Positions 13,919 through 39,200 of a DNA stretch of 64,000 bases are shown here, piece by piece. The DNA comes from Rebecca billardiae RCC1528 (Eukaryota > Protista > Haptophyta), in assembly GCA_965240325.2 (NCBI GenBank), contig OZ251236.1, positions 310,001-374,000 on the forward strand, given 5' to 3'. Position numbers and translations under genes: made by a program. The notes under the pieces are model-generated. The model was given only the letters and a program-made list of their open reading frames with translations, searched no databases and was not told the DNA's origin. The stretch's first letter is position 1. Every line of letters starts with the position of its first letter.

Positions 13919-14226
13919 GCCGAAGCGGGCGGCGCGCGCGCTGCGAGTGCGCCGGAATCGTCATATCGAAAGGCGGGGTCAGAGAAATCCGAATTAAATC
14001 GGCGCGCGCAATAAAACCGCGCGGCCGACGACGATGAAATAATCTACGCGCGCTCGTCGAGGACGACGGTGCTGACGATGCTGGCGATGGCGATGTGACG
14101 ATGTCGATGACGTGGATGACGAATCCGCATCAGACGAATGACGAACGAAGATGTCGTCGATATGTATGATGATCATCACGACTACCTAGCGGCCAGCTGC
14201 TGCGGCAGATGCGGCCGCGCGGCCGG

Positions 14227-17200
14227 CTAGCAGTCCAACAGCGCCGACGACGATCTCCCCTGCCGCGATGCCGCCTCGTACGGCCCAGGCTGCGCCTCGC
14301 CGTCCGCGGCGGCCGGCTCACGGCAGTCACGCGCGGCGCGCACGTGGCCGTGCCCGCTCGCGGCGGCGCCGTCCGCCGCACGCGCCTCCGCGCCGGCGTG
14401 GTGGCCCTCCTCGACCGCCTCCGCGCCCACAAAGTAATGCAGGTACGTGCAAAGCAGCCGCTCGACAAAATTGGCGTCCAGGAGGTATTGCAGGTGCGCC
14501 GCGCGCCCGAGCGTCTGATCGAGCGAGAGTCCGGCCAGGTGGAAGTCGACGTCGAGCCTCTTGCCGCGCACGCCCGCGCCGTGCAGCCCCCACAGCAGGT
14601 GCTGCAGCATCGCCGAGTAGACGAGCCCCTTCGGCCGCGAGTCGGCGAGCGCCTCGGGCGAGGGGTACAGCGACGCTGAATTGTACGGCACGTAGCGGTC
14701 CTGCGGGCAGCGCGCGCGCGCGGGTGAGGGGGTGTAGGGTTGGGGTTGGGTTGGTTGGGGTTAGGGTTGGAGCTCGGGCTCGGGCGCGGGTGGAAAGTGC
14801 CGCGGGTAGCGCAGGGCCGGGGCCGGGGTCGGGCAGGCGGCTGAGCACGCGCGCGCCACGCCACCGCGCGTGGGCTTGGAAGGCACGGGCCAAATCGAGC
14901 GAGCACGCTCGACGTGCCGCCGCTGGTGGCGGCGGCGGCGTGCACGGCGGCGTTGGCGTTGGCGCGTGCGCGCACGTTGACGCACGCGACGAGCAGGACG
15001 TGCCGGAAGTGGACGAGAAAGTTCCGCTCGACATTGAGCCGGTACAGCAGCGTCGACTGCGGGTCGGGCGCATCCCGAAGGGTGAGCTCGCGGATCGCCG
15101 CGCAGCGCGGGTGGTTGCGGAGCGTTCGGATGAGCACCTTCACGAGCCCGTTCTGACCGTACAGCCAGCCTAGGTGCGGGCAGCCGAGCGAGAGGAACGT
15201 GTGGCAGTAAGGCAGGTAGCGCGAAAACCGCTCGGTCTGGAGCGCCGCGCGCAGGATCAGCGCGCCCTGCGAGTGTGCGACGAAGGAGATGCGAAGCGGT
15301 GTCGCGGCCGCGCGGTGCTGCGCGCCGCCGCCCGCGCCGCCGCCCTGCGACTGCTGCAGGTGCGCCGCCCCCGCCGGCTCGCGCTGCTGCGCGCCCGCCG
15401 CGGGCACAGCACCGCCCGCCGGCTGCGCCGCGCCGCCGCCGCCGCCGCCGCAACCCGCGCCGCCTTGCGACGGTGGCAGCAGCAAGGACACCATGTCGTC
15501 AACCTCCGCGGCCAGTCTCTCGCCGCACTCGACAAAGGAATCAAGCGTGCGTCCCTCGTTAGCGCGCGAGAGTAGCACCCGCGACTGCGGCAGCAGCAGC
15601 GCCAGGCTGTTGGCGTACAGCTGGAGGTCGTACCGGTTGCCAAACAGGCCGTGCACGAGCACCACGGCGTGGATGACTGGCGGCGCGCCGGCGGCACCCG
15701 GCGGCGGCGCGGCGCCGCCGCCGCCTGCGACGGGCGGCGCTGCGCCGGCACCGCCGCCGCCTCCCGCCGCCGCCGCGGCCGTGGCGGCGCCCGCCGGTGC
15801 GGCGCCGCAGCCCGACGGCGTGCGCGCGCCGAGCTTGCCGCCGGCCGCGGCTGGCGCCGCTGGGCCGTCACCGACCGCGCCGCCTCCATTCGGCCGCGCC
15901 GCCGCGCCGCCGCCGCCGCCGAGCCGCGCGGGCGGCGGCGCCAGTCCGCTGTCAGAGGATTGGCTGCTGTGGCCGCCGAGGCGCGCGACGCACGCGGGCG
16001 GCGCAGAGTCCGCGCGATCGAGCGCGCCGCCCAGCGCGCGCGCCTGCGGCGGCGGCGTGCGCGGCGGCGAGGCGCTCAGCCGGGGAGCGGTCGCAGGCGA
16101 CGCGCCGCCGCCGCAGCCGGGCGGCGGCTGCTGCGTCGTGGCATCCCAGCAAAATGATCCGCCGCCGCCGCCGTGCGCGTCGCCCTCGCCGCCCGCGCGC
16201 GCAGCACCACCGCCGCCCTCGCCGCCTCCCAGCACCGCCCTCCGCCCGAGCCGCGGCTCAAAGAGCGAGTGCTCGACAATCGTCGGCTGCGCATCATATC
16301 GATGCGCCGCGCCGGCGCGCGCGCGCTGCGAGCGCGGCGCCGTGCGCAGCGCCTCGAGTCTCGGGCCGGCGTCGGCGTCGGCGTGCGGCGCGCGCGCGCG
16401 GCGCGTGCCGCCGCTGGAGCTGCCGCCGGCTGCGCCGCCCGTGGGCGCTGTGGCCGCGCCGGCGCTCCCGCGAGCGGCGGCGGCGGCGGCGGCGGCAGCG
16501 GCGCGCGAGCCGCCGTGCGGCGCAGCCGGCTGCGCCGCCGGCACAATCGCGCGCCGCTGCGACCATTCGCTCAAGTGTCGGCGCAGCGTCTCGGCGGCGA
16601 GGTATTCCGCCTCCGCCGCGGGCGCGGGCGCGACGGGCACGAGGTGCGCCCCGTCTCGCGCGTGCTGCGCGGCGCCGTGCGGCTGGGGCTGCAACGGCTG
16701 CGGCGGATGGCCCGCCCGGCCCGTCGACTGCTGCTCGGCGGCGGCGGCGGCGGCGGCGGCGGTAGCGGCGGTAGCGGCGGTAGCGGCGGTGGCCCCGGCG
16801 GCGGCGGCGGCACCACAACCACTGTACACGGGCCATCGCGGCGGCGCGTCCGCGGCGGCGGCGCCGCCGTTGAGCGCGCCGAAGCCTCGCAGCTGGCGGT
16901 GGTGCGCCGACGACGACCTTGGCCGCTCGGGCGAGCCCAGCGGCAGCGGCAGACCAAGCACCGCCGCGGCGGACGCGCCGCTCAGAGCCATCCGCTGCGC
17001 ACGCGCCGCGCACGCGAGTTGTGACGAGAGGCTGGTCAAGTCCTGCGCCAGGGTGCTCAGCGCGCCCGCGACCGTGGAGTCGGCCTGCGGCAGCCGCAGC
17101 AGCGCGTGCTCACGCGCCACCTGCAGCAGCTCCGCCACCGCCACATGCGAGCCAACGGCCCAGCTCAATCTCACGCCTCGCGTGCCCGCGCGCGCGCCCC

Positions 17201-17655
17201 AGCGCGCGCCGCCGCCCGGCGCCGCGCCGCCGCCCGGCGCGCCGCCGCCCGGCGTGAGGGGGTCGACGAAGGAGCCCACGCTGCCGCCGTCCTTCGACTC
17301 GAACGGCGAGTGCACGGTGCGCGAGCCAGCGGAGACCGCGGACATGCTGCTCGTCGAGCGGCAGAACGCAGGGCGGAAGGGCGGGCGGCACTCAGGCGGC
17401 GTGAGCGACGCGCGCGCGCCCGCGCCGCCCGCCGCGCCGCCGAGCCCAGCGCCCCCGGGCCGCGCGCCCGGCGGCGGCGGGCTCGGCGGCGGCGTGGGCG
17501 GCAGCGGCGGCGTCGACGCGGCACGCGGTCGCGCTCCGCTGTCTGTCTCGCTGCACCCGCCGAGCGCACGCGCGGCGCTGCCCGCGCCGAACCCCGACTC
17601 GGCTGCGGACGCGCCGCCACCGGGCGGTGCAAACGGGGAGGGCCCGCGCTGCCGC

Positions 17656-17728
<73 letters not shown>

Positions 17729-18540
17729 GCGGCGCGAACGCGCCGCCGACTGGCGAGGCGTCGAGCGTCGCCGAGCGCGCGCGCCCGCGGCGCACCCGGC
17801 GCGGCGAGTGCTCGAGCAGCTGCGCGCCGGGCTCGAGGAACGCCGACCTCGTCAGCAGCTCGGTCGACTCTGCCGATCTGTCCGCGTCGTCCCGCGCCGC
17901 CGAACCAGGCCATCGGCCGCCGATACTTCGGCCCGCGGAGAGCGGGCGGCGGTGCCACGAGAGCTCGGCGCGCCCGCTCGGCGAGAGGACCAGCTCCGCC
18001 AGATGGTCCGCGATCGGCGTCGGAGGGCTCGCGCCGCCGCCGCCAGCCGTGCCCGCCGCGCGCGAGCCGCCGCCGCCGGCCGCGGCTGTGAACGAGAGAG
18101 CGCGGCGCCGGCGGCCCGCTTGCGCGTTGGCGCCGCGCGCCGAGCCGCCCGTCGCCGCGCGGCGCGGCGGCGTGCGCCGGTGCGCGCCGTCGCCCGCCGC
18201 GCCTGCGCCGTCGTCGGGCGAGTCGTGATACACAATGCGCGGCGGATCGGGCGGCGAGAACGGCGAGCAGCCGCCGCCGAACGCGCCGCCGCCGCCGCCG
18301 GACGCGCCGCCGACGGACGCGCCGCCGCCGACGTTGAGCGGAGGCGGGCGCCTGCGCGCCGCGCTGATCGGCGCGAGCGGCGCCGAGGCTTTGGCGCCCA
18401 GCGCCCCCGCCGAGGCCGCCGCTGCTGTGTACGACCCCGCCGGGCCGGCGACAACCGGGTGCGGGCTCGGCACGGGCAGCGGTGGAGGCGTGGCGCGCCG
18501 CGGGCCCCCGTGCTCGCCGACCGCGCCCGTGCCGAGCGCA

Positions 18541-18586
<46 letters not shown>

Positions 18587-19571
18587 GATCCGAGGCGTCG
18601 TGCGAGCGCGCGCGGCGCGTGGCCCTGCTGCGCGGCGCCGTGTGCTCCCCGTCGATCTCGAGGTCGAGGTCGCGATCGAGATCGAGCGGACGCGCCGCCT
18701 CGCCGTCGATCTCGATCTCGATCTCGAGATCCAGATCGAGATCGAGATCGAGCGACCCACCGCCGCCCGCCGCCGCGGCACTTCCGTCGGCGGCCGGGGC
18801 GCAGTGGCCCGGCGGCCGGCACGCGGGCGGGCCCGCGCCGCCGCTGCTCGAGCCGGCCGCGCCGCCCGCACCGCCGGCCGCCGCCGCCCCGTACGCCGCC
18901 GCCGCACGCCGCGCGTGCGCGCCGCCGCGCGCCGCCAGCTCGGCCATGTGTCGGGCGCGCGCCGCGGCCGCGACGGCCGCGCGGCTCGGCGGGCTGGGCG
19001 AGGGCGAGCCTGGGAGGAGCAGCGCCTGCGGGTGGAGCCAGGCGGGCACGCCGATGCGCACGAGCTCGGCGCCCATCGACGCGTGCGAGAGCATCAGCGC
19101 GCCCACGCACCGCTCGCACAGCGTGACGAGCAGCGCGACGAGCGTCGAGTCAGTCGGACCGGCGCCGCCGAGGCCGGCCGCGGCGACGGCCCAGGCCCAG
19201 AGGTCGGAGCCGACGCGGCGGAGCGTGCGCAGCGTGCCCTGCGGGCCCGGGCCGTCCTGCTTCGCGAGCGCGACCCCCGAGCGCAGCGAGATGTTCGAGC
19301 CCGAGCCGCGCCGCCTCGGCATCAGCGGCGGCGACGGCGCGCGAGACGCGTGCTCGGCGGCCGGCTCCAGCGGCAGCTGCAGCGGTTCGTCAATTTGCAG
19401 CGGTTCGTCAAACGGCACGCGCGTGAGGTGCGCGCCCTTGGCCGGGCTGCTCTGCGAGCTGTGCGGCGCCGAGTGCGCGCCGCCCGACTGCGCCGCCGAC
19501 TCCCACGACGCCGCCTCGGGCAGCAGCTGCACGAGCGAGCGCGCCGCGCGCCGCTGCGCCGCCGAGACTGC

Positions 19572-19602
<31 letters not shown>

Positions 19603-20231
19603 AGCAGCGCGGGGTCGAGGTGCAGCCCGACGAGGCGCGTGCTGAACGCCGCGTGCACCATGCACCAGTGCCACTCGTCCCACAGCACCGGCTCGTACAG
19701 CACGCGGCGCTGCGCGTCGGTCGCCGTGTCCGCGGCGCATCTCAATAGTATCTCGCTCGTCGACACCGGCTTCAGCACGGCGGCGAGCGCGGAGGGCGTG
19801 GCGCCCTCGGCGGCGACGCCCTCGGCGAGCGGGGCGAAGAGCAGCTCGAACCGGAGCCGCACCGGCTCGACCTCGAGCCGCGGGCCCGCGCCCACCGCGG
19901 CCACGTCCAGGAGGCCGCACAGGCTGACCGACTCTGCGAGCGGGTGCTGCTGCCGCGCGTAGGAGATCAAAACGGGCGTGGTGGAGCACGCGCGCGCGCG
20001 CGGGTGCGGTGGCGGCTGGCCCTGCGCGCGCACGCCCACGACCGGCCGTCGGCGCGTGTGGCTGCCCACCGTGAGCCGCCTGCCCGTCGTGTCGCCGAGC
20101 GCGCTCACGCGGACCGCATAGTAGCCCTGCGTGTAGAGCGCCACGTTGTCAAGGCGCGCGAGGCAGATTTGAATCTCGACCTCGGCGCGGAGCACCGCGC
20201 GCGGCCGAGCGCGGCCGGCTGCCGGCGGCAT
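14227..20231 (-). CDS. FAM135-like protein with a C-terminal DUF676 putative serine esterase/lipase; intron 14701-14975
   Basis: N-terminal VEIQICLARLDNVALYTQGYYAVRVS. C-terminal VVLVHGLFGNRYDL, GERLAAEV, ISFVAHSQG, FLSLGCPHLG. The spliced last exon supplies DRYVPYNSA and LGRAAH (Ser/Asp/His triad). Start position approximate. Confidence 0.85.
17656..17727. repeat. (CCG) x about 24 trinucleotide repeat encoding poly-Gly in the FAM135-like gene
   Basis: Directly visible. Confidence 0.9.
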
Positions 20232-20578
20232 GCCCCCAGCCGCGGGCGTGGGTGGTACCGCGCGCACGGCGAGCCCGCGCGCGCGAGGCCGCTCGCTGCA
20301 CGCCCCGGGCCGTTCAACCCGGGCGAGGGGAGCACCTCGCTCGCTGCTGGACTTTTGCTCGCCGGGCTTTCAGGCTCTGGATATGGGCGAATGGTCATAT
20401 GACGCCCATCGTTTCCCGTATTCAACGAGCTGACAACGAGTATGGAGCTCGCCAGTACCCCTCGCAGTCTTCCGGACCGTTATCGATAACGCCGACCCGG
20501 ACACGCTCCCGTTGGGCTTTGCTTTGTGCTTTCCGCAAGTGGCCGCCGCCCCATTCAAAGGGCCATCACGCCGCCGCC

Positions 20579-23500
20579 ATGACGCAGGTGCGCGCGCGGC
20601 GGCGCTGACGCGCCGCGGCGCGCATCACGCGCCGGAGGCCCCGCCGCACGCGCGCACGCCGCGCTCACACTGCCCCGCGCGCCGCGCGCGGCCCGCAGGT
20701 CGCGCCGCCCGGACCGGCGGCGATCCGCGTCGAGGCGAGCACGCTCGAGCTGAACAAGGGAGTCAGCCTGCCGCGCGGCAAGCCCGACGTGAAGGTGACG
20801 TTCGACCTGCTCGGCGCCGCGAAGGCGTCGTCCGAGGTGGTCACGCCCGATCGCGACAAGGCCGAGCTCGGGCTCGACGCCTCCTTCGCGCTCGAGCTCG
20901 GCTCGGCCGAGCGCGGCCGCTTGCTCGACGCGCTCGACTCCGAATCGACCGACGACTCGAACGTCACGTTCACGCTGTTCGCGACGAGCAAGTCGGCTCG
21001 CGCGGCGGAGCCCGTGGCGATCGGCCGCGCCGTGACCAACCTCGAGAAGCTGCTCGTCGAGGCCAAGAAGGACATGCTCAAGGTGCCGCTGCCGCTGATG
21101 TCGACCGACCCGCGCAAGCCGACCGCACAGATCGGCAAGCTCACCGTGTCGCTGCTCGCGTTCGAGGCGCTCTCGCAGCTCGACGCGGCGCTGGAGAAGT
21201 ACGGCGACGCGCCCAAGGCCCGCGCCGCCGAGGCCAAGGCCGCGCCGCCCAGCGCGCGCGCCGTCGTGCGCGCGAGCGCGACCGAGCTCGAGCTCGCCCG
21301 TAACGTCTCGCTCCCGTTCGGGAAGGGCCGCGCGGCGGTGAGCTTCGAGATGCCGGGCGACAAGTCGGCGGCGTCGGCGGCGGTGCCGGTGTCGCGCGGC
21401 CGCGCGACGCTCGGCTTCGAGCACGCCGTGCGCACCGAGCCCGGCTCCGCGCCGCGCGCCGCGCTGCTCGACGCGCTGGATGCCGACGACTCGGCGGACG
21501 CGCCTCTCGTCGAGGCAGTCTTCACCGTGCTCGCGGCGGACGGGCGCGGCGGCTCGACGCCGTTCGGCCGGGCGGCCGTCGACCTGGAGAAGCTGCTCGA
21601 CGGGCAGCGCGACGTCACGCGCAAGCAGCTCCCGCTCATCGCCGTCGACCCGAAGCGCAAGCCCGCCGAACTGGGCACGCTCACGGTCACGCTCGAGGCG
21701 CTCGGCGCACTGAGTGAGATTGACGAAGCGCTCGAGAAGCACGGCTCGGCGCGCGCGGTGAAGGAGGCGGAGGGCGGCGCGCGCGGCGCGGAGGGCGCGG
21801 CGCGGCGCGACCGGCGCAGCCGCGCCGACGACGCGCCCGCCGCCGCGCCCGCCGCCGCCGCCACCGAGCCGCGGCGCCGCGGCGCGGAGCGGCCGCCGCC
21901 GCCGCGCGAGCCGTCGGCCGCCGAGCCGGCGCCCGCGCGCCGCTCGCAGGGCGAGGCGGCGGCGTCGGCGCGCACCGCCGAGCCGACGCGCACCGCGCGC
22001 CGCCCGCTCGGCTCGACGCGCGGCGGCGCCTCCTCCTCCGCCGCCGCCGCCGCCGCCTCGCCCACCGCCGAGACGATAGCTATTGAGATTACCCATCTCG
22101 AGCTGCTCGACGACGGCGCCGACGGCGTGCCGGCGGACGCGGACGCGCTGGTCGTCGACGTGGACCCGCTCGCGCTGCCGCACCGCCAGACGCGCGCGAT
22201 CGCGCTGCGGCGCGAGCGCGGCGCGGGCGCGTACGCCCTCGACTTCTCGCACGAGATCCCCGCGGGGCCGTCGACCAAGGCGCGCGAAGAGCTCATGGAC
22301 GCGCTCGAGTCTGAAACGCAGGAGGATTCCGATGTTTACTTCACGCTGCTCGCGCTCGACGCGCGCGCGGAGCGCGAGGTGCGCGCGGGGAAGGACGCGG
22401 ACGCGGTGGGCACCGAGCTGGGCGTGGGCTCGCTCAACCTCGAGCAGCTGCTCGAGCGCGGGCGCGACGCCTCGGAAGTCGTGCTCGGGCTGACGAGCAA
22501 GCGCGGCCGACGCGTCGCCGACTTGACCGTGAGCGTGCGCGCGCTCGGCGCGCTGCGCGCGGCGGAGTCGGCGCTCGAGGCGCACGGCACGTCGGCGAAG
22601 GCGAAGCGGGTCGAGCGCGCCGCCGTCTCGCCCGCGCGCTCCGCCTCCGCCTCCGCCGCGGCGCTGCTGCCGCGCGCGCCGTACGTCGGCGTCGAGATCG
22701 AGATCTCGCAGGTTTCGTTACCCAGGGTGGACGAGACCGTCCCAGACGGCGTGGACGACCTCGAGTTCGAGTTCGACCTGCTCGGCGTGGAGCACATCAA
22801 GTCGGCGCGCGTGCCGCTGCGCGACGACGGGCAGATGCCCATCGGCTACCGCGAGTCCTTCGCCGTCGGCATCGGCACCAAGGCGCGGCGCGAGCTGATG
22901 GACGCACTCGAGTCGTCGTCGCAAGAGGACTCGGACATTTATTTCTCGCTGTATGGCCTCGACCTCGACCGGTCGCAGCAGCCGCAGGGCGCGGCGGCGC
23001 GGCGCGGCGGCGCGGGCGAGCCGTCGCGCGTCGAGCTCGGCGCGGCGTTCGTCAACCTCGAGCGCATCCTCGCCAGCGGGCGCGACGTCGTTTCCGAGAA
23101 GCTTCCGATCATGCACGAGGATAAGCGCACGGGCGCGCAGCAGGTGGGGACGGTCACGATGACCGTGCGCGCCCTCAGCGCGCTCAGGGACGTCGAGGCG
23201 TCGCTGGACAAGCACGGCTCGCCGCGCGAGGCGGAGAAGGCGGAGCGCGCCGCGTTCGCGCCCGCGCCGCGCACCCCGCCCGACGGCAGCGCCGCGCGCG
23301 CGCCCGCCTCGCCCGAGCCGGCCGATCGCGCGGGCGCGCGCCAGCGCGGTGCGCGCCGCTCGGACGACGACGCGGAGCGCTCGCGCGCCGGCGGCCGCGG
23401 GCAGCCCGCCGCTGCCACGTCCGTGCGCGTGGAGGTGGACGCGTTCAAGCTGCACTCGGTCGACGACGTGGCGGACACGGTGGACGACCTGCTCGTCGGC

Positions 23501-26500
23501 GTCGACCTGCCGATGCTCGACGACGAGCTGAAGACCAAGGCCGTGCCTGTCGTCGAGAAGGCGCCGCGCGAGCACGTGTTTGGCTTCAGCCACGAGCAGG
23601 AGGTGCGGCCGGGCAGCAAGGCGCGGCGCGAGCTGATGACCGCGCTCGAGTCGGAGACGCAGGCGGACTCGGACGTGATCTTCACCGTGTACGGCGTGGA
23701 CCCCGAGGCGCCGCGCGGGGCGGAGCCCGTCGTGATCGGCTCGGCGGCGCTCAACCTCGAGGAGCTTCTCGAGCAGGACCGCGGCGACGCGGTGGGCCGC
23801 GCGCTGCCGGTCCGCACCGAGGGGCGGTCTGCGAAGGAGGTGGGCACGCTGACGGTGAGCGTGCGCGCGCTGAGCGCGCTCAAGGCGATCGACCGCTCGC
23901 TCGAGCAGCACGGCAGCCTGGCCGCGGCGCTCAAGGCGGAGGAGGCCGAGGCGGCGGGCGGTCGGAACACCCGCTCGGGCGGCGCCGCCGGGCGCGGGCG
24001 CGCCGCCGCCGCCACCGCGGCCGGCGGTGGCGCCCCCAAGCCGGTGAGCGTGAAGGTGCGCATGTCGCAGCTCGAGCTGCACGACACGAGCGCGCTGCCC
24101 GCCGAGGTTGACGACGTGCAGCTCTCGTACGAGTTCCTGCGCCAGGCGCCGATCGAGTCGTCGCGCGTGGGCGTGCAAGACTCGGGCAAGCACTTCTTCG
24201 ACCTCGAGCGCGACATCGACGTCTCCGCCGGCACACGCGCGCGCGCCGAGCTGATGGATGCGCTCGAGTCGTCGAGCGCCGCGGCGACGGACACGCGCTT
24301 CGTGGTGCGCGGGCTGCCGCGCGGCTCGGGCGGGCGGCCGGTCGAGCTGGGCGTGGCGAAGCTGAACCTGGAGGGCGTGCTCACCTCGGAGCGCGACGTG
24401 CGCGACGAGGCGCTTCCCGTCGTCGACGCGAGCGGGCGGCGCGTCGGCACGCTCACCGTGAGCCTGAGCGCCGTCGACGCGCTGCGGCAGGTGGACGACG
24501 CGCTGGAGAAGCACGGCTCGGCGCGCGACGCCAAGGCGGCCGAGGTGCGGCTGCTCGAGCGCCCCGCAGCCGGCGCGGCGGACGCCGAGCGCGGCCGGCG
24601 TGAGCGCGGCCGCGCGGCCGCGCCCGCCGCGCCCGCGGCCGGCGCCGCCACGTCCGTGCGCGTGGAGGTGGACGCGTTCAAGCTGCACTCGGTCGACGAC
24701 GTGGCGGACACGGTGGACGACCTGCTCGTCGGCGTCGACCTGCCGATGCTCGACGACGAGCTGAAGACCAAGGCCGTGCCCGTCGTCGAGAAGGCGCCGC
24801 GCGAGCACGTGTTTGGCTTCAGCCACGAGCAGGAGGTGCGGCCGGGCAGCAAGGCGCGGCGCGAGCTGATGACCGCGCTCGAGTCGGAGACGCAGGCGGA
24901 CTCGGACGTGATCTTCACCGTGTACGGCGTGGACCCCGAGGCGCCGCGCGGGGCGGAGCCCGTCGTGATCGGCTCGGCGGCGCTCAACCTCGAGGAGCTT
25001 CTCGAGCAGGACCGCGGCGACGCGGTGGGCCGCGCGCTGCCGGTCCGCACCGAGGGGCGGTCTGCGAAGGAGGTGGGCACGCTGACGGTGAGCGTGCGCG
25101 CGCTGAGCGCGCTCAAGGCGATCGACCGCTCGCTCGAGCAGCACGGCAGCCTGGCCGCGGCGCTCAAGGCGGAGGAGGCCGAGGCCGCGGGCGGTCGGAG
25201 CACCCGCTCTGGCGGCGGCGCCGCCGAGAGCACTCGCCCCGCGCCGGCCGCTGCCCCGCCGCCGCCCAAGCCGGTGAGCGTGAAGGTGCGCATGTCGCAG
25301 CTCGAGCTGCACGACACGAGCGCGCTGCCCGCCGAGGTTGACGACGTGCAGCTCTCGTACGAGTTCCTGCGCGAGGCGCCGATCGAGTCGTCGCGCGTGG
25401 GCGTGCAGGACTCGGGCAAGCACTTCTTCGACCTTGAGCGCGACATCGACGTCTCCGCCGGCACGCGCGCGCGCGCCGAGCTGATGGATGCGCTCGAGTC
25501 GTCGAGCGCCGCGGCGACGGACACGCGCTTCGTGGTGCGCGGGCTGCCGCGCGGCTCGGGCGGGCGGCCGGTCGAGCTGGGCGTGGCGAAGCTCAACCTG
25601 GAGGGCGTGCTCACCTCCGAGCGCGACGTGCGCGACGAGGCGCTTCCTGTCGTCGACGCGAGCGGGCGGCGCGTCGGCACGCTCACCGTGAGCCTGAGCG
25701 CCGTCGACGCGCTGCGGCAGGTGGACGACGCGCTGGAGAAGCACGGCTCGGCGCGCGACGCGAAGGCGGCGGAGGAGCGCGCGGCGCGGCAGGGCGGGCC
25801 GGGCGAGACGCGCGCGACGCGCGAGCGCCGGCGCGAGCGCGGCGCGCCTGCCGACGCCTCGCGCCGCGGCGGCGCCGACGGCGGCCGCGAGCCGGCGGCG
25901 CAGGCCCAGTCTGAAATCGCGCTGCTCGTCTCGGCGGTGACTCTCGACGACGTGGGCAAGGTGCACCAGGGCGTGCACGAGCTGCAGCTCGCGGTGGACT
26001 TCTTGGGCGCGCACGCGGAGGGGCGCGAGCCGCGCTCCGCGCCCGTCACGCTGCAGGACTCGGGCAGGCACCTGCTCGACAACTGGCGCGCCGCGCTCGA
26101 CGTGCGCGCAGGCGCAGGCGCCGGCGCCGGCGGCGTGGCCGAGGGGCGTCGGGCAGTCTTGGAGGCGCTGGAGCCGGGCAGCGCGGAGGAGGACTCGGAC
26201 GTGGTGCTCACGCTGTACGGGCTCGAGCGGCCGCCGTCGACGGCTCGGCCGCGCGAGCTCGGCACGGCCACGTTCAACCTTGAGCAGCTGCTGCAGCGCG
26301 GGCGCGAGGCGACGGCGGAGGCGGTGCCTCTGCTGACGCCTCGGCCGCCCGGCGGCGGGCTCGGCGCGCAGCGCACGCGGATCGGCGAGCTCACGCTCTC
26401 GACTGAGGCGCTGCCCGCGCTGCGCGCGCTCGACGCGCTGCTCGAGGAGCACGGCGACGCGCGCCGCGCGCTCGCGGCCGACGCCGCGCCGCGCGGCTCC

Positions 26501-29500
26501 GGCGCGCAGCGCGGCCCGCGCGGCTCGGCGGCCGCGGAGGCGCCGCGCACGCGCGGCGCGAGCCGTGCCGCGGGCGGCGGCGCGCGGCCGAGCGCCGCGG
26601 CGGCCAAGGTGCCGGCGGACACGGTGCGCATATCCGTGGCGAGCGTCGAGCTGCCCGACGTGGACGCGGTGCTGCCGGACGACGTGGACGAGCTGTTGGT
26701 CGGCATCGACTTCCTCGGCGCAAAGGAACTGCGTACGCCCGTGTTCGGCGCGCTCGAGGCGGGCGGGCTGCACCCCGTGGGCTACACGCACGACCTGGAC
26801 GCGGGCAAGGGCACGGCGACGCGCGACGCGCTGCTCGACGCGCTCGACTCGGCGGAGACGGCGGACTCGGACGTCTTCTTCGTGCTGTACGCCGTGCCCG
26901 CGCGCGCCGACGCCGAGCCGGTCGAGCTAGGGATGGCCGCGGTCAACCTCGAGGCGCTGCTTGACCGTGGGCGCGATCAGATTGAATCTCGGCTCGAGCT
27001 GGAGCCGTCGGCGGGCGGCGCGCGGCGCGGCGGCGGCGCGGGCCGCGCCGAGCTTGGAAGCATCACGGTGAGCGTGGAGGCGCTCACGGCGCTGCGCGGC
27101 GTGGACGAGGCGCTCGAGAGGTACGGCGACGCGACGCGCGCCAAGGCCGCCGAGCGCGGCGGCGGCCGCGCCACCGGCCGCGGCGGCGCGCAGCCGCCGC
27201 CTGGCGCGGCCGCCGGCGCCGCCCTTCCCCTCGAGCCCGAGGCGGTCGTCTCCGTCGAGATCCACGAGCTGGTGATCGACGACGTGGGCCAGCTCGACGC
27301 GTCGGTGGACGAGCTCGAGTTCGAGTTTGACTTTCTCACGATGGACGACATCCGCTCGGGGCCTGTCAAGGTCGAGCCGGACGGCACGCACGTCGTGTAC
27401 TTTGCAAAGGGTGCGCCCCGCGCGCGCGGCCGAGCGGGCGGGCGGGCGGGCGGGCGCGAGCGCGGGCGCGGCGTTGGCGCGGCGGGCGCGCGGGGCGTGG
27501 CGCGTGGGGCTGCACGCGGGCAGTGCAGTTCGCGCGCGCGGAGCCCGTGGCGCGCTGCGCACAGCGGTCGGCGCACGCGCCCAGCACACGACTGCCCTTG
27601 CCGACCGCCGCGCGCCGTGCCCGCCCGCTCCGCACGCGCCGCGCGGCGCAGAGTTTGACGTCTCGCCCGGCACGCGCGCGCGCGAGGCGCTCATGGACGC
27701 TCTCGAGTCCGCCTCCACCGAGGACTCGGACGTCTACTTCATGCTGCACACGATCGACCGAGACCGGACCGACCCGCGCACGGGGCAATCTCGGCGCGTC
27801 GAGATCGGCGCGGCGTATGCAAACCTGGAGGAGATGCTCAAGCGCGGGAGGGACCTGCTCAACGCGCGGCTCAAGGTGCTGTGCGCGCGGGCCGCCTCGC
27901 CGCGCGGGCGTGCCGCCGGGCGCGGCGGGCGGCGGTGTCGCGGGCCGCGCGGCCGCGCGGGGGGGGGGGGCTCACTCAGCCCCGGTGCGTGTCCGAATAA
28001 TTGCGCCGCCCTCGCGCGCGCCGTGCCGCGCACGCATACAGATTCACTCGACGGCCAAGGGGCGGCAGCACGAGGTGATCGGCACCGTGCGGCTCACGAT
28101 CCGCGCGCTCGACGCGATGGCGGACATCGACGCCGCCATCGACGAGCACGGCTCGGTCAAGCAGGTGCGCGCGCGCGCGCCTGCCCCGCGGCCGGCGCGG
28201 CCGCTCGAACCCCGCGCGCCACGCACGCGTGGCTGACCGCATTCGACGAGCGCTGGGCGCGCCGCGCCGCCGTGGCCGCGCGCGCTCGCGCCGCCGCAGG
28301 CAAAGCTCAGGGAGCGCGAGCTGGGCAAGTCGCGCTCCGCCGCCTCGCTCTCGCGCACCGACGTCGCCCGGTACTCGCCGTCGGCCGCGGGTGCGCGCGA
28401 GGGCGCGGCGCGCACCGCGCCGACGCGAGGCGGCGCGGCATCGCAGCGGCAGGGACCGCCCGCGGCGGCGCGGCAGCCATACGCGCCGCCGCCGCCGGAG
28501 GAGGAGGTGCCGCCGCCCGCCGAGGCGACGATCGCCGTATCCAAGCTGCAGCTCTCCTCGGCGGCGCAGCGCGACACGGCGGCCGCGGGCGCGCTCGCCG
28601 TCCGCGTCGACTTCCCGGGAGCCGCCGAGCCGCGGACGACGACGATCAAGCTGCCATCCTCCTCCGGCGGCCGCGGCGGCGCGGGCGTGCCCGTGGACCT
28701 CAGCGAGGCTGTCGACTTGTCGCAGGGCACCGAGGCGGGGCGCGCCAACCGCAAGGCGCTGCTCGAGGCGCTCGACCGGCCGGCGGACGCGGCGGAGGAC
28801 GACACCGATGTCGTCTTCGAGCTCCTCGCGCTCTCGCGGCCGGAGGCGGCGGCCGCGGCGCGCGGCGAGCCAGTGCCGCGCACCGCGGGCCGCGTGCTCG
28901 GCGTCGGCTCGGTTTCTCTTGAGAAGATTCTCGACGACGGCGCCGACATGCGCCGCGCGCCGGTTCAGCTCCGCCCGCCCGGCTCTGGGCCGAGCGCGCA
29001 GCCCGTCGCCACGCTCACCGCGGACGTGGTCGCGCGCGACGCGCTGGAGGAGCTCGACGAGGCGTTGGACAAGCACGGCTCGGCGGAGCGCGCGGCGCAG
29101 GCGGACGTTCGCGAGGCGCGTGAGCGCGGCGCGGCGAGGCCGAGCGCGCGCGGCGGCGCGGCGCAGTCGGCCACGCGGCGCAGTGCCGGCGGCTACGCTG
29201 GCGGCTACGCCGCCGGCGCGGCGCAGCCGATGCCCGCGGACCCGGCGGAGGCCAAGGCGCACGCGCGCGCCGAGATGATCGAGCGCAACCGCCGACAGCC
29301 GCCACAGCCCTACAAGGCCATGGCGCCGCCGGCGCGCGCCGCGTTCGGGGCTCTGAAAGACGACCTGCGCGCGGGCACGGCGATGGGCAAGGCAGACTAC
29401 GCCGCCGCGCTCGGCAGCACGCACCCCGCGCGGCTGCACGACAGCTCGGTGCTCGCGGCGCGCGAGGCGGATGCGGGCCGCTCGCTGGGCGCCGCGCTCG

Positions 29501-30912
29501 GCCCGGGCGCCGCGCTCAGCGCTGTTGCGCTCGCGGGCGCGCCGCCGGCCTCGTCGGGCGCCGCGCCCGCGCGCGGGCGCGGCAGCTCGGCGGCGGCGCA
29601 GCCCGCCCTCGCGGGCGCGGACGCGGGCGCGTCGAGCGTGCTGCTACGGCCGATCCGCGCGGAGGGCGTGCCGGCCGTTGCGGAGGGCTACTCGGTTGTG
29701 GCGCGCACGCTGCGCCTCTGCGTCTTCGACCCGTCGACCGCCGCGCTGCGCGGCAACGTGCTCTCGGTGAAGGCGGCGGACGGTGCCGCCGCGCCCGCCG
29801 GCGGCGCGGGCGCCAACCGCGGCGCAGCGGGCGGGACCACCGCCTGGCCCTTCGACAAGGCGCTGCAGCTGTTGCTCCGCCAGGCAGCGGACGCGCCCGC
29901 CGACGCGCAGCTGCTCGTCCAGCTGGATGCCGTGTGCGTGCCCGCGCCCGGCGCGCCGGCGCGCGCCGCCATGAGCGGCTCCGGCGGCGCGGACGGCGCG
30001 GATGGCGCGGGCGCCGGCCGCCGCGCGCGCCGCGCGCCGGCCGCGCCGACCGGGCCGTTTTGGGAGCGGCGGCGCGGGCGCGCGCGGCCTGTCGCGCTGT
30101 GCTGGGGCGCGCTGCCGCTCGGCGTGCTCGCCGAGTGGAAGCCTGCGCTGCGCTCGGCGGGCTCGGCCGCGAAGCAGGCGGTGAAGGAGCGCACCGTGCA
30201 GATGCGCCGCGGCGCCGCCTTCAGCGGCTCCGGTCTGCTCACCGCCAAGCCCAGCGCGCCGCCGAGCTCGCGCCGAGGCGGCGGCGGCGCCGCGGGCGGC
30301 GGCGGCGGCACCGCCGCCGGGGGTCCAACCCTCGTCCTGGGCATCTCCGCACCCTCGGGCACAGGCACGGACGCGGCGACGCTCGGCGCGCTGCCTGCCG
30401 AGCTGCTGTGCGAGCTCGCGCACGCGCGCATGTTCGCCGTGCAGCGCGCGCTCCTGGCGAAGACAATCGGCTCAGCGACCGACTTGGCGGGCGGCGCGGA
30501 CGGCGGGCTGCTGTGGGCACCCCACGCGGCCGCGTTCGCGCAGCTCGCCGCGTCGGCGGACACGCTGGGCGCGCTCGAGCGCGTGTGGACGGCGCGGCTG
30601 CGCGCGCCGAGCGCGACCAAGGCCAAGCGTGACTCAGCCTCCTTCGAGGCCGACACGCTCGGCGAGTCGGCGGTGGCGCTCACACTGCTGCTCGGCGCGC
30701 GCGGCGCGATGGAGCGCGCGCCGACGGACGCGCGCCGCGCCGAGCTGCTCGCCGAGGCGGAGCGCGAGGCGAAGGAGGGGGGCAAGCGAGTGCTGACCGC
30801 GCTCGCCGAGCCCGCCGCCAACGCCGCCGCCGGAGGCACCGCGCCCTTCCGCGAGCGAGCCCTCGTGCTGGACCCTGCTGCAGAGCTCGCGGCCAGGCGC
30901 GGGCCTCCGTGA
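20579..30912 (+). CDS. 3,226-aa protein: 12 tandem RPGRIP1/RPGRIP1L C-terminal-type C2 domains plus a C-terminal nephrocystin-1 (NPHP1)-like domain; exons 20579-20587, 20699-27410, 27652-27875, 28042-28164, 28300-30912
   Basis: Four GT..AG introns give a continuous 9,681-nt frame. Each repeat reads I/VxIEIxxLxL...R..LMDALES...DSDVxF...ELGxAxVNLExLLxxGRD...IGxLTVSVxALxAL. Tail motifs YSVVARTLRLCVFD, GNVLSVKA, CWGALPL, LPAELL, LERVW..KRD. Confidence 0.85.
23414..25770 (+). repeat. Internal tandem duplication of a two-domain C2 block (about 23414-24540 and 24647-25770)
   Basis: Near-identical DNA at an offset of about 1,230 bp; only the linker differs markedly. Confidence 0.9.
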
Positions 30913-32228: not shown

Positions 32229-33296
32229 TTGCCCGAGTTGCCGTTGGGCCTCGGTGGGGCGGGCCTGATGCTGACCACCCCTTCATTCCAACCCGTAAAC
32301 CCGCCGCCACGCGGTCGAATTACTATGGAAATTCCGCGCGCCAACGGCCCCACGTTCCCGACCCCATCGTCAGTTACCCCAGCCGCCCCCCTGCACGCAC
32401 GCGCGCGAGGCACCCCGGCGTGGCGGGCGCCGGGCGTGACGTCCGCGCAGGGTGTCGTAGACGGCATGGACGTCGACGAGTCACAACACGCACCGACGCC
32501 TACGGTGCACACCGACCTCCCAGACGATGAACGGCACAATGTCGTATGGGCCGAGCACACGGCCGACATGACCGGCAGCAACCTCTCTGATGGCAGGGGC
32601 GGAGCTCGCGGCTCTGCCTCGCGCCAGGGGACGACCTGGGCTAGTGGTCCCGGTCGCCCCACTCCCACCGGTGGCGCGGGCACTCGCCCCACGCACACTG
32701 CGACCAACATGCTCAACGAACGCATTGATGAGACCAAGGCAGACATGACCGGCAGCAACCTCTCTGATGGCAGGGGCGGAGCTCGCGGCTCTGCCTCGCG
32801 CCAAGGGGCGACCGGGGCTAGCGGTCCCGGTCGCCCCACCCCCACCGATGGCGCGGGCACTCTCCCCACGCACACTACGGCCAACATGCTCAACGAACGC
32901 ATTGATGAGACCAAGGCCAACATCACCTGCCACAACTGCTTTGACGGCAGGGGCGGAGCTAGCGGCTCTGCCTCGCGCCAAGGGGCGACCGGGACTAGCG
33001 GTCCCGGTCGTACCACCTTCACCGGGTCCGAGGGACGTCTCCAGACACACCCTGTGCCCAGCATACTCAACAAGCGCACAGTGACTGACAGTGACAAGAA
33101 AGGAGAATGCACTATGCACTTGCAGTACATGCGGGCAGGCCCCCATGTCCCAGACACTATCAGTCAGCCGGCGGGCCGCCGTAAAAAAGGCAGGCATGTC
33201 CAACCTGCAGGTCTCAAAGTGAGGCCACAGTCGGGTACACTCACAGATGATATAGTATGCGGCTGCTGCGCAAGCACTGATGATAGGACAGGGTGA
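32229..33296 (+). CDS. Putative ORF1 of the retrotransposon (or a repeat-bearing 5' UTR), with about 2.5 copies of a 177-bp unit
   Basis: Open frame overlapping the ORF2 start by 17 nt. Repeat units start at 32565, 32742 and 32919. No recognisable gag, RRM or zinc knuckle; start codon uncertain. Confidence 0.4.
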   Translation: MPELPLGLGGAGLMLTTPSFQPVNPPPRGRITMEIPRANGPTFPTPSSVTPAAPLHARARGTPAWRAPGVTSAQGVVDGMDVDESQHAPTPTVHTDLPDDERHNVVWAEHTADMTGSNLSDGRGGARGSASRQGTTWASGPGRPTPTGGAGTRPTHTATNMLNERIDETKADMTGSNLSDGRGGARGSASRQGATGASGPGRPTPTDGAGTLPTHTTANMLNERIDETKANITCHNCFDGRGGASGSASRQGATGTSGPGRTTFTGSEGRLQTHPVPSILNKRTVTDSDKKGECTMHLQYMRAGPHVPDTISQPAGRRKKGRHVQPAGLKVRPQSGTLTDDIVCGCCASTDDRTG

Positions 33297-36200
33297 TGCA
33301 GGCCCAGGTGTTGCTGGTGCAGCAGCAGCGCCAATGCAGCAGGGCTACCAATACAGCCATGCTGACATCTCGTATGCATACTGCAATGTTGGGGGAGCAG
33401 GTGGGGCTGACCCCTCTGTCCGGCGGGACGACATCGCCACTTGGATTCGAGCAGTGGGGACACCTGATATTGTCTTTTTGGTGGAGACCCAAATGCCTGC
33501 GCATCAGGTAGTGCGGTGGGCCAAGTCGTTCCCGGAGTACACAGTACATGCAGAGCACGCCCGCGACAGGCGCAAGGGCGAAAAAGGTGCCAGGGCCGGG
33601 TGTGCCATCCTGGTACGCAAGGCACACGTGGGTGCACCCAAATCGCTCCACCTCAACAGTGTGTGCAGAGGCAGGGAAATACTATACCCAGAGCTGGCAG
33701 GGCACATCATTTCGGGTGAAATCACGCTCTGCAGGGGCAATGGGCAGGCTGTCCCCATGTGGGTGTGCTGCTTCTACAACCCGCATGATGAGGAACGGCA
33801 GCACCTGCTGCTTCCACACATAGTCAACCACCTTCGTACAGGCACATGCATAGGCCTTCCCACAGCTGGCAACATGCGGACTCATGCTGTGCACGTAGCC
33901 AGGCATGCTGCCAGGCTGCAATTGGTAGCATGCGATGGAAATGGGCACATGCACGACAGCAACGCAGGGGAGGGGGCTACCCCCAAGGTAGTGTTCCGCA
34001 CATACATGACAGACGCTGACCACCTCTTCAACCAAATACCCAGCACCACACGATGGGACACGCTCGAAAGGCCCACATTCATCACTGCACACAGGGAGGA
34101 CGGCAATGGGGCGGATCGATCTGTGATTGACTACATATTCTCCAACATGGACACAGTTGGGCACACCGGACACATGGACATATCGGAAAAGGCCACCCTG
34201 CGAATGCCAGGAGCACACGTCCCAATATATGGCCGGATTCACTCGGTGGCACTGCGCGGCGCTGCTGCAGTACTGGCCTCACCAGTGCAACCTCCCAGGC
34301 ACATACGCGTGGACCTGGGAAAGACGTCACCTGACTGGAATAAAGCCAAACAGCTGCTTGCGATGTGGATGGAGGGCCTGCCACTACACATTGCGGACTT
34401 TGCTGAGGCCCCAGTGCCGGCACATATGCTGGTGCAACCTTCGCTGGTGACGACAGCAGCCACTGCGCTGACAACGCTGAGACACCTGACCACACTGGCC
34501 ACCAGGGACATGGCAACTGTACTGGAGCAACCCAGTGTATATGACGGACAACCAGACACGCCCCTGAAGATCCGACCAGCCACAGCGGGCGCAGCAGCGG
34601 GTCAACACAAATCCAAAGCAGATGCTGCTTCTGCTGCGCTGCATGCAGGCGATATTCTGGCTAACAGAGCAGCTGCTGGGCTGCCAGCTGGTCCAGCAGT
34701 GCGCAGAGCAGTGCGCAGGTACGAGCGGACCTGGGGCACTGGAGCTGCACAGTCCCAGCACTGGATACAAGTGGCAATGGGGCCTCACGGACAGGTGCCG
34801 GTAGGGCCATTTCTGTCCCACCAGCGCTGGAGACAAATCGTGCAGCAGCAATGCAGGACGAGCCGCGCGCAAGTGAAAGCTGTGTGGCAGCAGCAGGCCG
34901 AGGAACAAAAGAGGGCGTGGTTCGCCAAAGTCAAGGTTGAGACCAAAAAGAACTCGCATAAATTGCGTGTCATGGTGTATGCCAAGGACCCCATCACACT
35001 GCCTACCATCGTCAGAAGGAGCGATGGGGCACTGGCCACCAGCGTTGACGATGTGAAATCGGAGTACAGGGGGCACTACCAGGGCCTTCTGGAGCGACAA
35101 TACACTCGGCCCGGGGGCAGGCCTCCTTGGCACGCTGGAGGTCATATGTGGCACGACATTAGGGCCGCATGGCATACTGATCCGGGGGACGCATATGTCA
35201 CCGCCCTCGGAACGCCACCCACCCCCGCGCAAATACGGCACATCATCACATCTGAGGTGGGAGGCAACTCGGCACCTGGTCCAGATGGCATACAGTACAA
35301 TGTACTCAAGCTCTTGGAAGGCCACCATGCCGAGCGCGACGAGCCTGTACTGCCAAGCGGCACGCGCACACACAGGCAGCACGCTGCACAGCAGACTGGT
35401 GAGCAGCAGGGGGCAGCCAGGGGACAGGGGACAGGACACCCTGGCCCGATCGCCACTATTATATCTAATCTCTGCGCAGTCATGTACGCGACAGGGACTC
35501 TTCTGGACGGACTCCAGCAAGGGGAGGTTGTCTCACTACACAAGCACGGGGATATGCACGTGCTCGGGAATTACAGGGGCATAACACTCAACAGTGTGGT
35601 GTACAAAATCATGGCAAGACACCAAAACAACGTCATGCAAGCTGCGTCCGACAGGCTCAGGCTAATCGAGCCGGAACAGGCTGCCAGCAGAGAGGGTGGG
35701 CAAGTGGTACAGCAAGTCGCTGTCTTTGCCAATGTGGTGGCCGATGCACACCGTTCCCGGCGCACGCTGTTTTGTGCACTGATGGACATTCAAAAAGCCT
35801 TCGACACTGTGCCATACCAAGGCATTGAGGATGGCTTCCGCAGCCATGGGTACCCAGCCATGTTTTATACCCTCATGCGCTCCTTAGGAGAGGGGCATGA
35901 TGTGGTGGTGAGGACGCCATATGGGCCCACTGATAGTGTACGCTTACGGTGTGGCACGAAGCAAGGTGACCCTGCTAGCTCCACTAAGTTCTGCCTGTTC
36001 ATCAACATGTTCCTCAGGTACCTGAAGAGCAGGCATGGCGGGTACCATGTACAGTCCAAATGCAGCTCAGACGACGCGGACGCTGCTGCAGGGCAGGTGA
36101 CAGTGGTGGCCACTGCTATCATGGACGATATCAATTTGTACGCGCACAGCAGAGCAGACATCACAGCCATGATGCAGGACCTCGTCGACTTTTTGTGGTA

Positions 36201-39200
36201 CTATGATATGGAGCCCAACTACCCCAAATCCAAGGTGGCAGTGTATGTGCCCCCTGGGCACGCACAGGTGGACCCAATACAGGTCATCAACAGGGCAACT
36301 GGACAAGCTGCTCTCATAGACACGTTGCAGGATGGCGAATACTTCACGTATGCAGGGGTGGTGACCAACATTCATCTGGCAACTGACAGGATGTTCGCCA
36401 GTCTCAAGGCCAGAGTGGCCAAAGCCGCCGCGCGGGTGCAGGCAGCTGACTGCTGCACCGAGACCAAAAAGCTGCTCACTGTGTGGGATGTCACGTCGAT
36501 ATTATTCTACTTCTACGAGGTGGTTGGCATGTCCAGGGGCAGACTCAACCAGCTGCAAAGCCTCATGGTGGAGCCAGTGGTCAGGAGTGCTGCCCTGCCA
36601 GGGCGCATCGCATACGAGGCAGCGTGCTTTCCTCCCCAGTTCCTGGGCCTAGGCCTCATCAATCTACATGCGCACCTGGAGAGTGTCCAGGCACACGCGT
36701 ACTACCACTTCCTGGCAGATGACCCACGTGGGCTATGTGCGCGCACGTCCATGGCAGCCATGGGTGCCCTGCAATCAGTAGAGCACCCAGCACGGGCGCG
36801 CGTACGCGGCGCCTCTACATTTGCCTCCACCATCGTCACCGGGAGAAATTCTGTACGACGCATGGGGTGGGCACTGCTCCCATCCGAAGTGAATCTCGGC
36901 AGCAAGCTGATGCAGCAGCTGGCCCCCGGGCTCGGGATGCTGGCCACAAACCGGACCCACAGGGCATATACAAGACTCGCCGCAATGCCAGGGGCAGCTG
37001 CCCTCCCCTGCTTGGCACCACACGGCCTTCCTGACGCGAACGGAGAGATGCTCAGCCGGATCGAGCACTCACTGGTGGACGGTACCCAGCACGTGTTGCT
37101 AGGTGTGCTCATGCAACAGCCACCAAGACAGATGGTCTCCACTGCGTTCTATGCGGAGCTGTCCTCACTGCCACATAGGTCCCGCCCGGCGGTGATACTG
37201 GCAGTGAGGGATATGCTGAGGGCAGTCCTGACCGACCAGAGCTACTACAGGTACCTGGGGCACGTGCCTGCCGCCAAGCGTACTGTCTGTGATCCACCCA
37301 ATCCCCGCCATCTGCCTGCACTTCCTGTGCCTGGCATGCTAATGGTGGCCACGGACGGCTCATTCGATGCAGAGAACGGGCAGGCCGCGTGTGCCTTTTC
37401 CTTCTTCAACGGCAACAATTACACTGCCCCTGTGCATGTGTATTGCTCCAAGTTCGCGGGGCACCAGGCACCAGGCCCAGCCGAATTCATGGCCATCACA
37501 GATGCATTGGTGCAGATAGACCCCACCGCCAACCTGCTGGTGTGCACTGACCTGCAGGAAATGGTAAAGGCCGCCGAAATGTGGCAAAACGACCCCTGGG
37601 ACCGACGGCTTCGGCAGGGGCACCACGCGTACGCCCCATACATCGCCAGGGTCATGAGCCTGGTGGGCTGGCGCCGCTTGCGGCATGGCAGCACCACTTC
37701 ATTCGAGCATGTCAAGGCGCACTCTGCTGACGATGCTGCTGCGCGACACCTCAGCCTCACACACAACCCGGGGGACCAGCACTGCACTGTCAGCCAACAC
37801 AGTGTGGCGGCTTTGCGCCAAGCAGGGATGAACCCCAAAACCCTGCTCAACGCATGCAGCGATGCGGGGGCCAAGCTCTGCTGCTCTGACCCCGCAACCC
37901 CCTGTGTGACTCACAAGAGAGGTGGCCACCCAAATGCGGGTTCCCATGCAATGGTACAGCTGGCCGATGGAGAGCCAGTGGCAGGCCGAATCAAGCCCCT
38001 TGTGTATGACAGTGTGCTATCACAAAGGGCAACCCACCTGCAAGTCACCAAGTCCAGCTGTGACTTGGTGGGTGAATGGACCGGCGTGTGGCCAGAGGCC
38101 TCCACTGGCGTACTACGGACCTGGCAGGCCAACACTGTGCCTGCCTACTACATACTCCACCACGGATATGAGTTCCTGCAGCCTGCTGCCTTGCGAGACC
38201 CGACGTTGCTCTCTGTGCGATTCCAGTCGGGGGCGGCATTTAGCGATGCCTGCCCCCTCTGCGATCATGCTCCACTGCTACATCCAGCGCCAGATACTGA
38301 GCACCACCTCTTCTCTGAGTGCCCTGAGGTCGATGCCTACCGAATGGCTGCTGCCAGAAGCGTATCGCATGTAATTGAGCCATTCATGCAGGGACAGGCT
38401 GCAGCATGGAACTTGGCACGTCACGTGTGCTCTGGGGCTGCTCTCATGGGCAGGGTGCCCAGCACACTGAAGACCACTGTGGGGGGCAACGTGCATCTCG
38501 GCAGGACCATGCACGTGGCCTTACTGAAGGCAGGGCTAGGCATCATGCAGGCCCGCAAGGACGTGGACTCCCAGCTGTCGAAGGCAGGACGTCTCCTTCG
38601 ACATGCCAGGGAGCTTCGGCCGCCGCCTGGGCACGGCCCAGGGGGGCAGCCCCCACCCCCACAGGCACAGGCAGGCCCAGGAGGGGCGATTGCCATGAAT
38701 AATCAGTTGCAAGGACCACCTGTCATCCAGCAGCAACCCCCTGCCCAGGCTGGCCAGGGCTGGCAGGCAGGCGCGGGGCAGGCCAACCTGCACCAGCCCA
38801 TAGCGCGCGGTCACCACGTGCGCCCCCAGTCACTCTCGCAGGCGTGGCCCCTTCAGCGTGCTCGCCCCCTCCCTATGGTGATTGCGTGGCCTCTGCAGCC
38901 TGCCACACCTCTTGTGGCATGGCCGCTCCAATATGCCACCCCGCTGGCTCGCAGCAATGTGGGTCCGCCGGACAATATGTTGACACATGGGGGCCCTGAG
39001 ATGGAGGCAGACCCGGCTGCTGGCAGTCACACTGGTAACGGAGCTCACAGCGACCTTACACAGTCAGACACTGGACAGCAGGCCGCACAGCCGCCTGCTG
39101 GCTCTGCCAGGCCACCGGCAGCCCCCAGGCGTGGGCTGCCTCCTCCTAGTCAAGCGCAGCAGGACAGCCCCCCGCCCAAACGACACTGCCCACCCCGCCA

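Follow-up and report, generated by a model that had tools for sequence, protein, structure and literature searches.

The locus considered here, on the plus strand at positions 20579-30912 of a 64,000-nt stretch of contig OZ251236.1 from Rebecca billardiae RCC1528 (the window), raises the question whether a single gene could join an array of C2 domains of the RPGRIP1 type to a C-terminal domain resembling that of nephrocystin-1 (NPHP1), and whether its product could act at the flagellar transition zone. How the ciliopathy module of NPHP1, NPHP4 and RPGRIP1L is physically arranged at the transition zone is still unclear. The explanation favoured here, with a probability of roughly 0.6, is one spliced gene for a protein of about 3,200 amino acids (aa), a multivalent transition-zone scaffold carrying twelve RPGR-interacting domains (RIDs) and an NPHP1-like tail. 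Its parts are known, and their combination is a new domain architecture. An earlier interpretation made without database searches, here called the sequence-only reading, had proposed such a fusion and is partly supported.

Twelve repeats had been claimed, and twelve were counted in two ways. The closing motif LxxxDxALExHG occurs twelve times in the deduced protein (at residues 172, 352, 633, 843, 1075, 1276, 1486, 1686, 1922, 2146, 2352, and 2616), and a hidden Markov model (HMM) of the repeat delimits twelve full-length domains of 161 to 190 aa each, separated by low-complexity linkers of 15 to 105 aa. Located with this HMM, all on the plus strand, are repeat 1 at 20711-21208 (188 bits), repeat 2 at 21254-21748, repeat 3 at 22064-22591, repeat 4 at 22679-23221, repeat 5 at 23411-23917, repeat 6 at 24038-24520, repeat 7 at 24644-25150, repeat 8 at 25268-25750, repeat 9 at 25904-26458, repeat 10 at 26612-27130, repeat 11 at 27236-28155, which is interrupted by introns 2 and 3, and the last and divergent repeat 12 at 28513-29082. 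The sequence-only reading had equated the repeats with the C-terminal C2 domain of RPGRIP1 and RPGRIP1L. When exon 2 was compared with the Pfam family RPGR1_C (PF18111), ten stretches were matched with an E-value of 9.5e-105 and 348 bits, above the gathering cut-off of 22.9 bits, the best stretch being repeat 10. The intron-split repeat 11 reached 14 bits to PF18111 on one exon. Repeat 12 is without a Pfam match and joins the others through the repeat HMM; it scored 91 bits against an HMM of nine other repeats, the best of 3,000 shuffles reaching 10 bits. A PDB search with a profile of the repeats returned a sole match, chain B of 4QAM, the RPGR-interacting domain of RPGRIP1, with an E-value of 3.8e-13 over 140 positions. 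By these matches the repeats are RPGR1_C, or RID-type, C2 domains, in agreement with the earlier assignment. The RID is described as a type II C2 domain that binds RPGR and neither calcium nor phospholipid (PMC4519163).

Repeats 5-6 and 7-8 constitute a tandem duplication of about 1,230 nt with 99% identity; the proteins specified by repeats 5 and 7 are identical, those of repeats 6 and 8 nearly so. In the window, the two-repeat unit with 99% DNA identity occupies 23406-25564 with a spacing of 1,230-1,233 nt, and the linkers after the unit differ. This identity could stem from a duplication of very recent date or from gene conversion that is still going on. It is the only internal duplication shown directly, and the twelve repeats form no supported clade of their own in a tree of domains.

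The second part of the proposed fusion is the tail, the last 426 aa (29632-30909), which is distinct from the repeats and separated from repeat 12 by an Ala/Gly/Arg-rich linker of 183 aa (29083-29631), whose middle segment is partly conserved in P0001 and P0002, proteins of two relatives. For the tail, a C2 beta-sandwich containing three long loops of low complexity is predicted at 29632-30366, followed by an alpha-helical domain at 30373-30831, its helices falling at residues 248-400 of the structural model. This is the layout described for NPHP1, in which an SH3 domain precedes the NPHP1-C2 and an alpha-helical domain (Zhang and Aravind, PMC3495828). When the model was used for a shape search among the cluster representatives of the ESM Atlas, 'nephrocystin-1 isoform X2' ranked first, with 280 residues aligned and a template-modelling (TM) score by query of 0.44. 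The alignment spans residues 1-423 of the tail model and takes in the C2 and helical parts together. A second cluster labelled 'nephrocystin-1-like' is among the rows, and unrelated rows had TM scores of at most 0.33. Searches with language-model features led from the tail and from the P0002 tail (41% identical) to the same chordate clusters with scores of 0.91-0.94; these are labelled putative nephrocystin-4 and nephrocystin-4 and, for the window tail, also SH3-domain fragment. Kinship to NPHP4 fits the tail less well, because the C2 domains of NPHP4 are followed by immunoglobulin-type domains and not by helices (PMC3495828). A tail model from single-sequence AlphaFold2 was discarded as unusable (predicted local distance difference test, pLDDT, 41).

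Several results weigh against relating the tail to NPHP1. Among 1.84 billion representatives, phmmer retrieved P0001 (52% identity) and P0002 (43%) and nothing else, hence no sequence link to a named family. No match was obtained when the PDB was searched with a profile of the tail alignment. A word-indexed search with the tail gave no match among 8,000 scored candidates, Ala-rich words swamping the query, and with a clean 54-aa window of P0001 only the query itself was returned; both searches are uninformative. The structural model is weak (pLDDT 49, predicted TM score 0.39, from an alignment of three sequences), and the TM score of 0.44 lies under the usual same-fold line. The recognition value of the window tail was low, so that the feature matches are weak when taken alone, and they point to clusters of nephrocystin-4 no less than to NPHP1-like ones. 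Further negative results were less telling. Nothing was found by Pfam for tail and repeat 12 at E-values up to 1, which says little since the library was without the nephrocystin-4 model PF28126 (Pfam 38). A scan of metagenome contigs with the tail alignment produced 558 pattern matches, none of them confirmed, and a word-indexed search with the 2,204-aa array was likewise without match and uninformative. The motif order of the tail resembles that of human NPHP1, which serves as a lead and is not counted as evidence.

These results leave room for a tail that is a C2 and helical module peculiar to the lineage and unrelated to NPHP1 by descent, in which case the protein would be one of several RID-array proteins with differing C-terminal attachments. 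Besides the missing sequence-level match and the low-confidence model with its TM score below 0.5, such an origin could draw on C2 folds being common and dominating the PDB matches; Foldseek against the PDB gave only weak rows for the C2 domains of PI3K and DOCK. In addition, NPHP1 has been described as restricted to opisthokonts (Barker et al., PMC4092220) or as metazoan-specific (Nevers et al., PMC5850483). Against it stand the first rank of nephrocystin-1 among the Atlas cluster representatives together with the second NPHP1-like cluster, the 280 aligned residues, which are about twice a C2 domain and should include the helical part, the nephrocystin-labelled feature matches from two independent orthologues, and the view that the C2 domain of NPHP1 dates back to the last eukaryotic common ancestor (Zhang and Aravind, PMC3495828). 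A purely lineage-specific module appears unlikely on this evidence, at odds of about one in four. The tail probably shares ancestry with the NPHP1 homology domain, judging from its modelled shape. The predicted C2/helical shape and the top rank in the Atlas agree with the claim that it represents the C-terminal domain of NPHP1, and a significant sequence match is missing.

To place the gene in its genomic context, the whole 72-Mb assembly (41 contigs) was scanned. RPGR1_C scored 44-53 bits per domain, and at least 40 RID copies were detected in at least five genes, three of which carry arrays. On contig C8 (loci L013/L016, 934000-949999), an RPGRIP1L orthologue has one C2-C2_1 domain (E-value 5.6e-41) followed by five tandem RID domains. 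Contig C23 (loci L017/L018, 124000-140999, minus strand) contains one open frame with at least 12 distinct RID domains, about 17 by position; the array covers two overlapping loci and consists of two alternating subtypes with several near-identical units. The C23 array also showed an odd 50-bit score to the Pfam family CDI (cyclin-dependent kinase inhibitor) with no accepted stretch, which probably reflects a repeated short linker motif. Additional RID copies are present on contigs C29 and C36. At the C36 locus (L015, 256000-265999), several partial RID-type matches are scattered across three frames of one strand, which suggests another intron-rich RID-array gene. In the tree of domains, the repeats of C8 fall into one clade and those of C23 into another, indicating that both arrays grew by duplication inside their own genes. 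The sequence-only reading had assumed that the domain occurs once per protein and had regarded the fusion as a lone Rosetta stone. Neither assumption holds: the RPGRIP1L orthologue alone has five copies, and because at least five genes carry the RID, the fusion is better described as one product of a lineage-wide expansion of this domain. In contrast to the RID, the nephrocystin-like tail is single copy in the genome and carried by this gene only. PF11618 (C2-C2_1) has one genomic locus, on C8; in the gene studied here it reached 27.3 bits, below the cut-off of 29.2, and only within a RID repeat. The genome also contains three B9-domain loci and a CC2D2A-type C2. The MKS module is therefore present and, by implication, a flagellar transition zone exists.

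From these components a mode of action may be proposed. The twelve RIDs would be arranged as beads on disordered linkers rich in Ala, Arg, Gly, and Pro, and the C-terminus would be a nephrocystin-1-like homology domain, a C2 sandwich plus a helical domain. Docking at the flagellar transition zone could be the role of the tail, in the manner of NPHP1 within the NPHP1-4-8 module. Since the RID is a calcium- and lipid-independent protein-binding C2 domain, the array may offer multiple binding sites, up to twelve, for an RCC1-like (RPGR-type) or another transition-zone partner. Owing to the disorder of its linkers, the chain would be able to extend over tens of nanometres, and the protein as a whole would act as a long multivalent scaffold of the ciliary gate.

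A point against this proposal is that RID arrays occur in several other genes, not all of which need act at the transition zone. The fusion could be real and act elsewhere, for example in another cytoskeletal or membrane structure, with the RID C2 being widely redeployed, as RID-type C2 domains in at least five genes of the genome would allow. Apart from this protein, the two domain types are known from components of the transition zone, and the matching set of transition-zone genes has been retained in the genome, which makes a function outside the transition zone rather improbable, at about one chance in five. A bolder version of the transition-zone scaffold is also conceivable and must be regarded as tentative, being somewhat doubtful at present: the protein would be the only NPHP1 orthologue of the lineage, its SH3 plus coiled-coil front swapped for the twelve RIDs, so that the NPHP1 and RPGRIP1L arms would be joined covalently. 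No SH3 family was detected at E-values up to 1 in the pieces scanned (20789-27400, 27627-27860, and 28507-30909).

The fusion presupposes that array and tail belong to one gene. Reading the plus-strand frames and the junctions yielded a model of five exons from 20579 to 30912, which reproduces exactly the coordinates and the length given in the sequence-only reading: the joined coding sequence of 9,681 nt comprises 3,226 codons plus stop, contains no internal stop, and specifies an uninterrupted protein of 3,226 aa. Exon 1 (20579-20587) is a mini-exon of 9 nt, ATG and two codons, followed by the donor GTGCGC; its start context gccgccgccATGa is a good Kozak sequence, and an AT-richer intergenic stretch lies 5' of it. 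The start at 20579 is a plausible candidate. Intron 1 (20588-20698; 111 nt, GT..CAG) is needed to connect this start to the frame of repeat 1, in which no ATG occurs further upstream. Exon 2 (20699-27410) holds repeats 1 to 10 and the first half of repeat 11. Intron 2 (27411-27651; 241 nt) is in phase 1, and the spliced codon GAG restores E-F-D-V; intron 3 (27876-28041; 166 nt) is in phase 0. Exons 3 (27652-27875), 4 (28042-28164), and 5 (28300-30912) are all on the plus strand, as is intron 4 (28165-28299; 135 nt). All four introns open with GTGCGC or GTGCTG and close with CAG. The size of 3,226 aa is an upper estimate, because further introns could hide in the long in-frame linkers. With a G+C content of 75-80%, the region has long open reading frames in all six frames, and recognisable protein is found on the plus strand only. 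The long minus-strand frames were rejected as genes, being by-products of the high G+C content. The stop codon, TGA at 30910-30912, was considered as a hidden GTGAGT donor leading to an extra exon. This was ruled out, as the end point is common to the three genes, to within a few residues, and lower-GC sequence follows in both relatives.

Intron 4 decides between one gene and two. It is in frame and contains a TGA at 28234-28236; if it were not spliced, a C2-array gene would end there, and repeat 12 plus tail would constitute a second gene. Besides the in-frame stop, two genes would be in line with predicted proteins of about 800 aa from gene callers in both relatives; the splicing of the gene is predicted from genomic sequence. 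The predictions of about 800 aa, however, start at GTG codons from a prokaryote-style caller, and in all three species the interval from the upstream stop to repeat 12 is devoid of ATG codons. The donor GTGCGC and the acceptor CAG of intron 4 resemble those of the other introns of the gene, and an AT-richer intergenic stretch, as seen at the true 5' and 3' ends, is absent from the junction. On contigs L001 and L002 of the relatives, exons with upstream repeats precede, on the same strand, an intron in the matching place (between H-G/K-x-x-x-x and A-K-x-x-E), which is followed by the last repeat and then by the tail. The position of intron 4 is conserved, its sequence and length are not: the equivalent in L001 has 286 nt, a length not divisible by three, so that this intron shifts the frame and splicing from GTGCGC to CAG leaves it open, and the equivalent interval in L002 contains two stops. 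The introns in repeat 11 are positionally conserved as well: L002 shares both, and L001 shares intron 3. The last three repeats and the tail are conserved in the two relatives, and in the tree of domains repeat 12 and the orthologous last repeats of P0001 and P0002 form a clade with support of 99/99. The order array, last repeat, tail is therefore older than the split of the three organisms. Conserved intron positions and the frame-shifting intron in L001 thus favour the fusion as one gene, on genomic data, and a single gene is very likely. Separate genes for array and tail are improbable, at perhaps one chance in ten.

If the favoured reading of a single transition-zone scaffold is true, a natural fusion of an NPHP1-like domain and RIDs would be evolutionary evidence that the two parts share one assembly, and the origin of the nephrocystin homology domain would move well outside animals and fungi. 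Should the protein moreover be the only NPHP1 orthologue, the nephrocystin homology domain would predate opisthokonts, contrary to its published restriction to opisthokonts or metazoans; RID and NPHP1 domains would be predicted to act on the same assembly, and haptophyte-type algae would be predicted to use multivalent RID arrays as a general principle in constructing the transition zone. The RID has been amplified across the genome, which shows that this domain is usable as a repeatable protein-binding unit, a property not evident from the single-copy animal proteins.

Two neighbouring loci of the window were also recorded. Downstream, at 33280-39501 on the plus strand, an intact open reading frame of 2,073 aa matches the Pfam families for AP-endonuclease (Exo_endo_phos) and reverse transcriptase (RVT_1); with 58-63% G+C within surroundings of 70-80%, it looks like a young retrotransposon of the type without long terminal repeats (non-LTR). 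Upstream, at 14130-20267 on the minus strand, the divergently oriented neighbour is an open frame of 2,045 aa with a putative serine esterase domain (DUF676) near its C-terminus (E-value 1.5e-22).

A published description of RID arrays or of a RID-NPHP1-like fusion was not found in a limited literature search, and comparisons were made with known systems that share parts of the architecture. Each repeat corresponds to the C-terminal RID of RPGRIP1 and RPGRIP1L (NPHP8, MKS5; 4QAM chain B), with which it shares R-x-x-L-x-D-A-L, the G-R-D loop, and the final strand. The differences are the number of RIDs, twelve here and one in animals, and the lack of the N-terminal coiled coil, the C2-C2_1, and the central PKC-type C2; the true orthologue in this genome is the separate C8 locus with its five RIDs. 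The tail resembles nephrocystin-1 in its predicted order of C2 sandwich and helical domain, and nephrocystin-1 is its best Atlas shape match. It differs in the long low-complexity loops inserted into its C2 domain and in a similarity too low for phmmer, and in the protein no SH3 domain in the scanned pieces and no N-terminal coiled coil were seen. C2CD3 and other multi-C2 ciliary proteins are likewise scaffolds of the cilium or centriole with C2 domains in tandem (PMC3495828), but those of C2CD3 are of the PKC type, whereas the domains described here are protein-binding and of the RID type. The RID-array genes on C8, C23, and C36 have the same domain in tandem with low-complexity linkers, but are without the nephrocystin-like tail. 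An NPHP1-like domain in a haptophyte-type alga would favour, among the published views on the age of NPHP1, the one that traces its C2 domain to the last eukaryotic common ancestor (PMC3495828).

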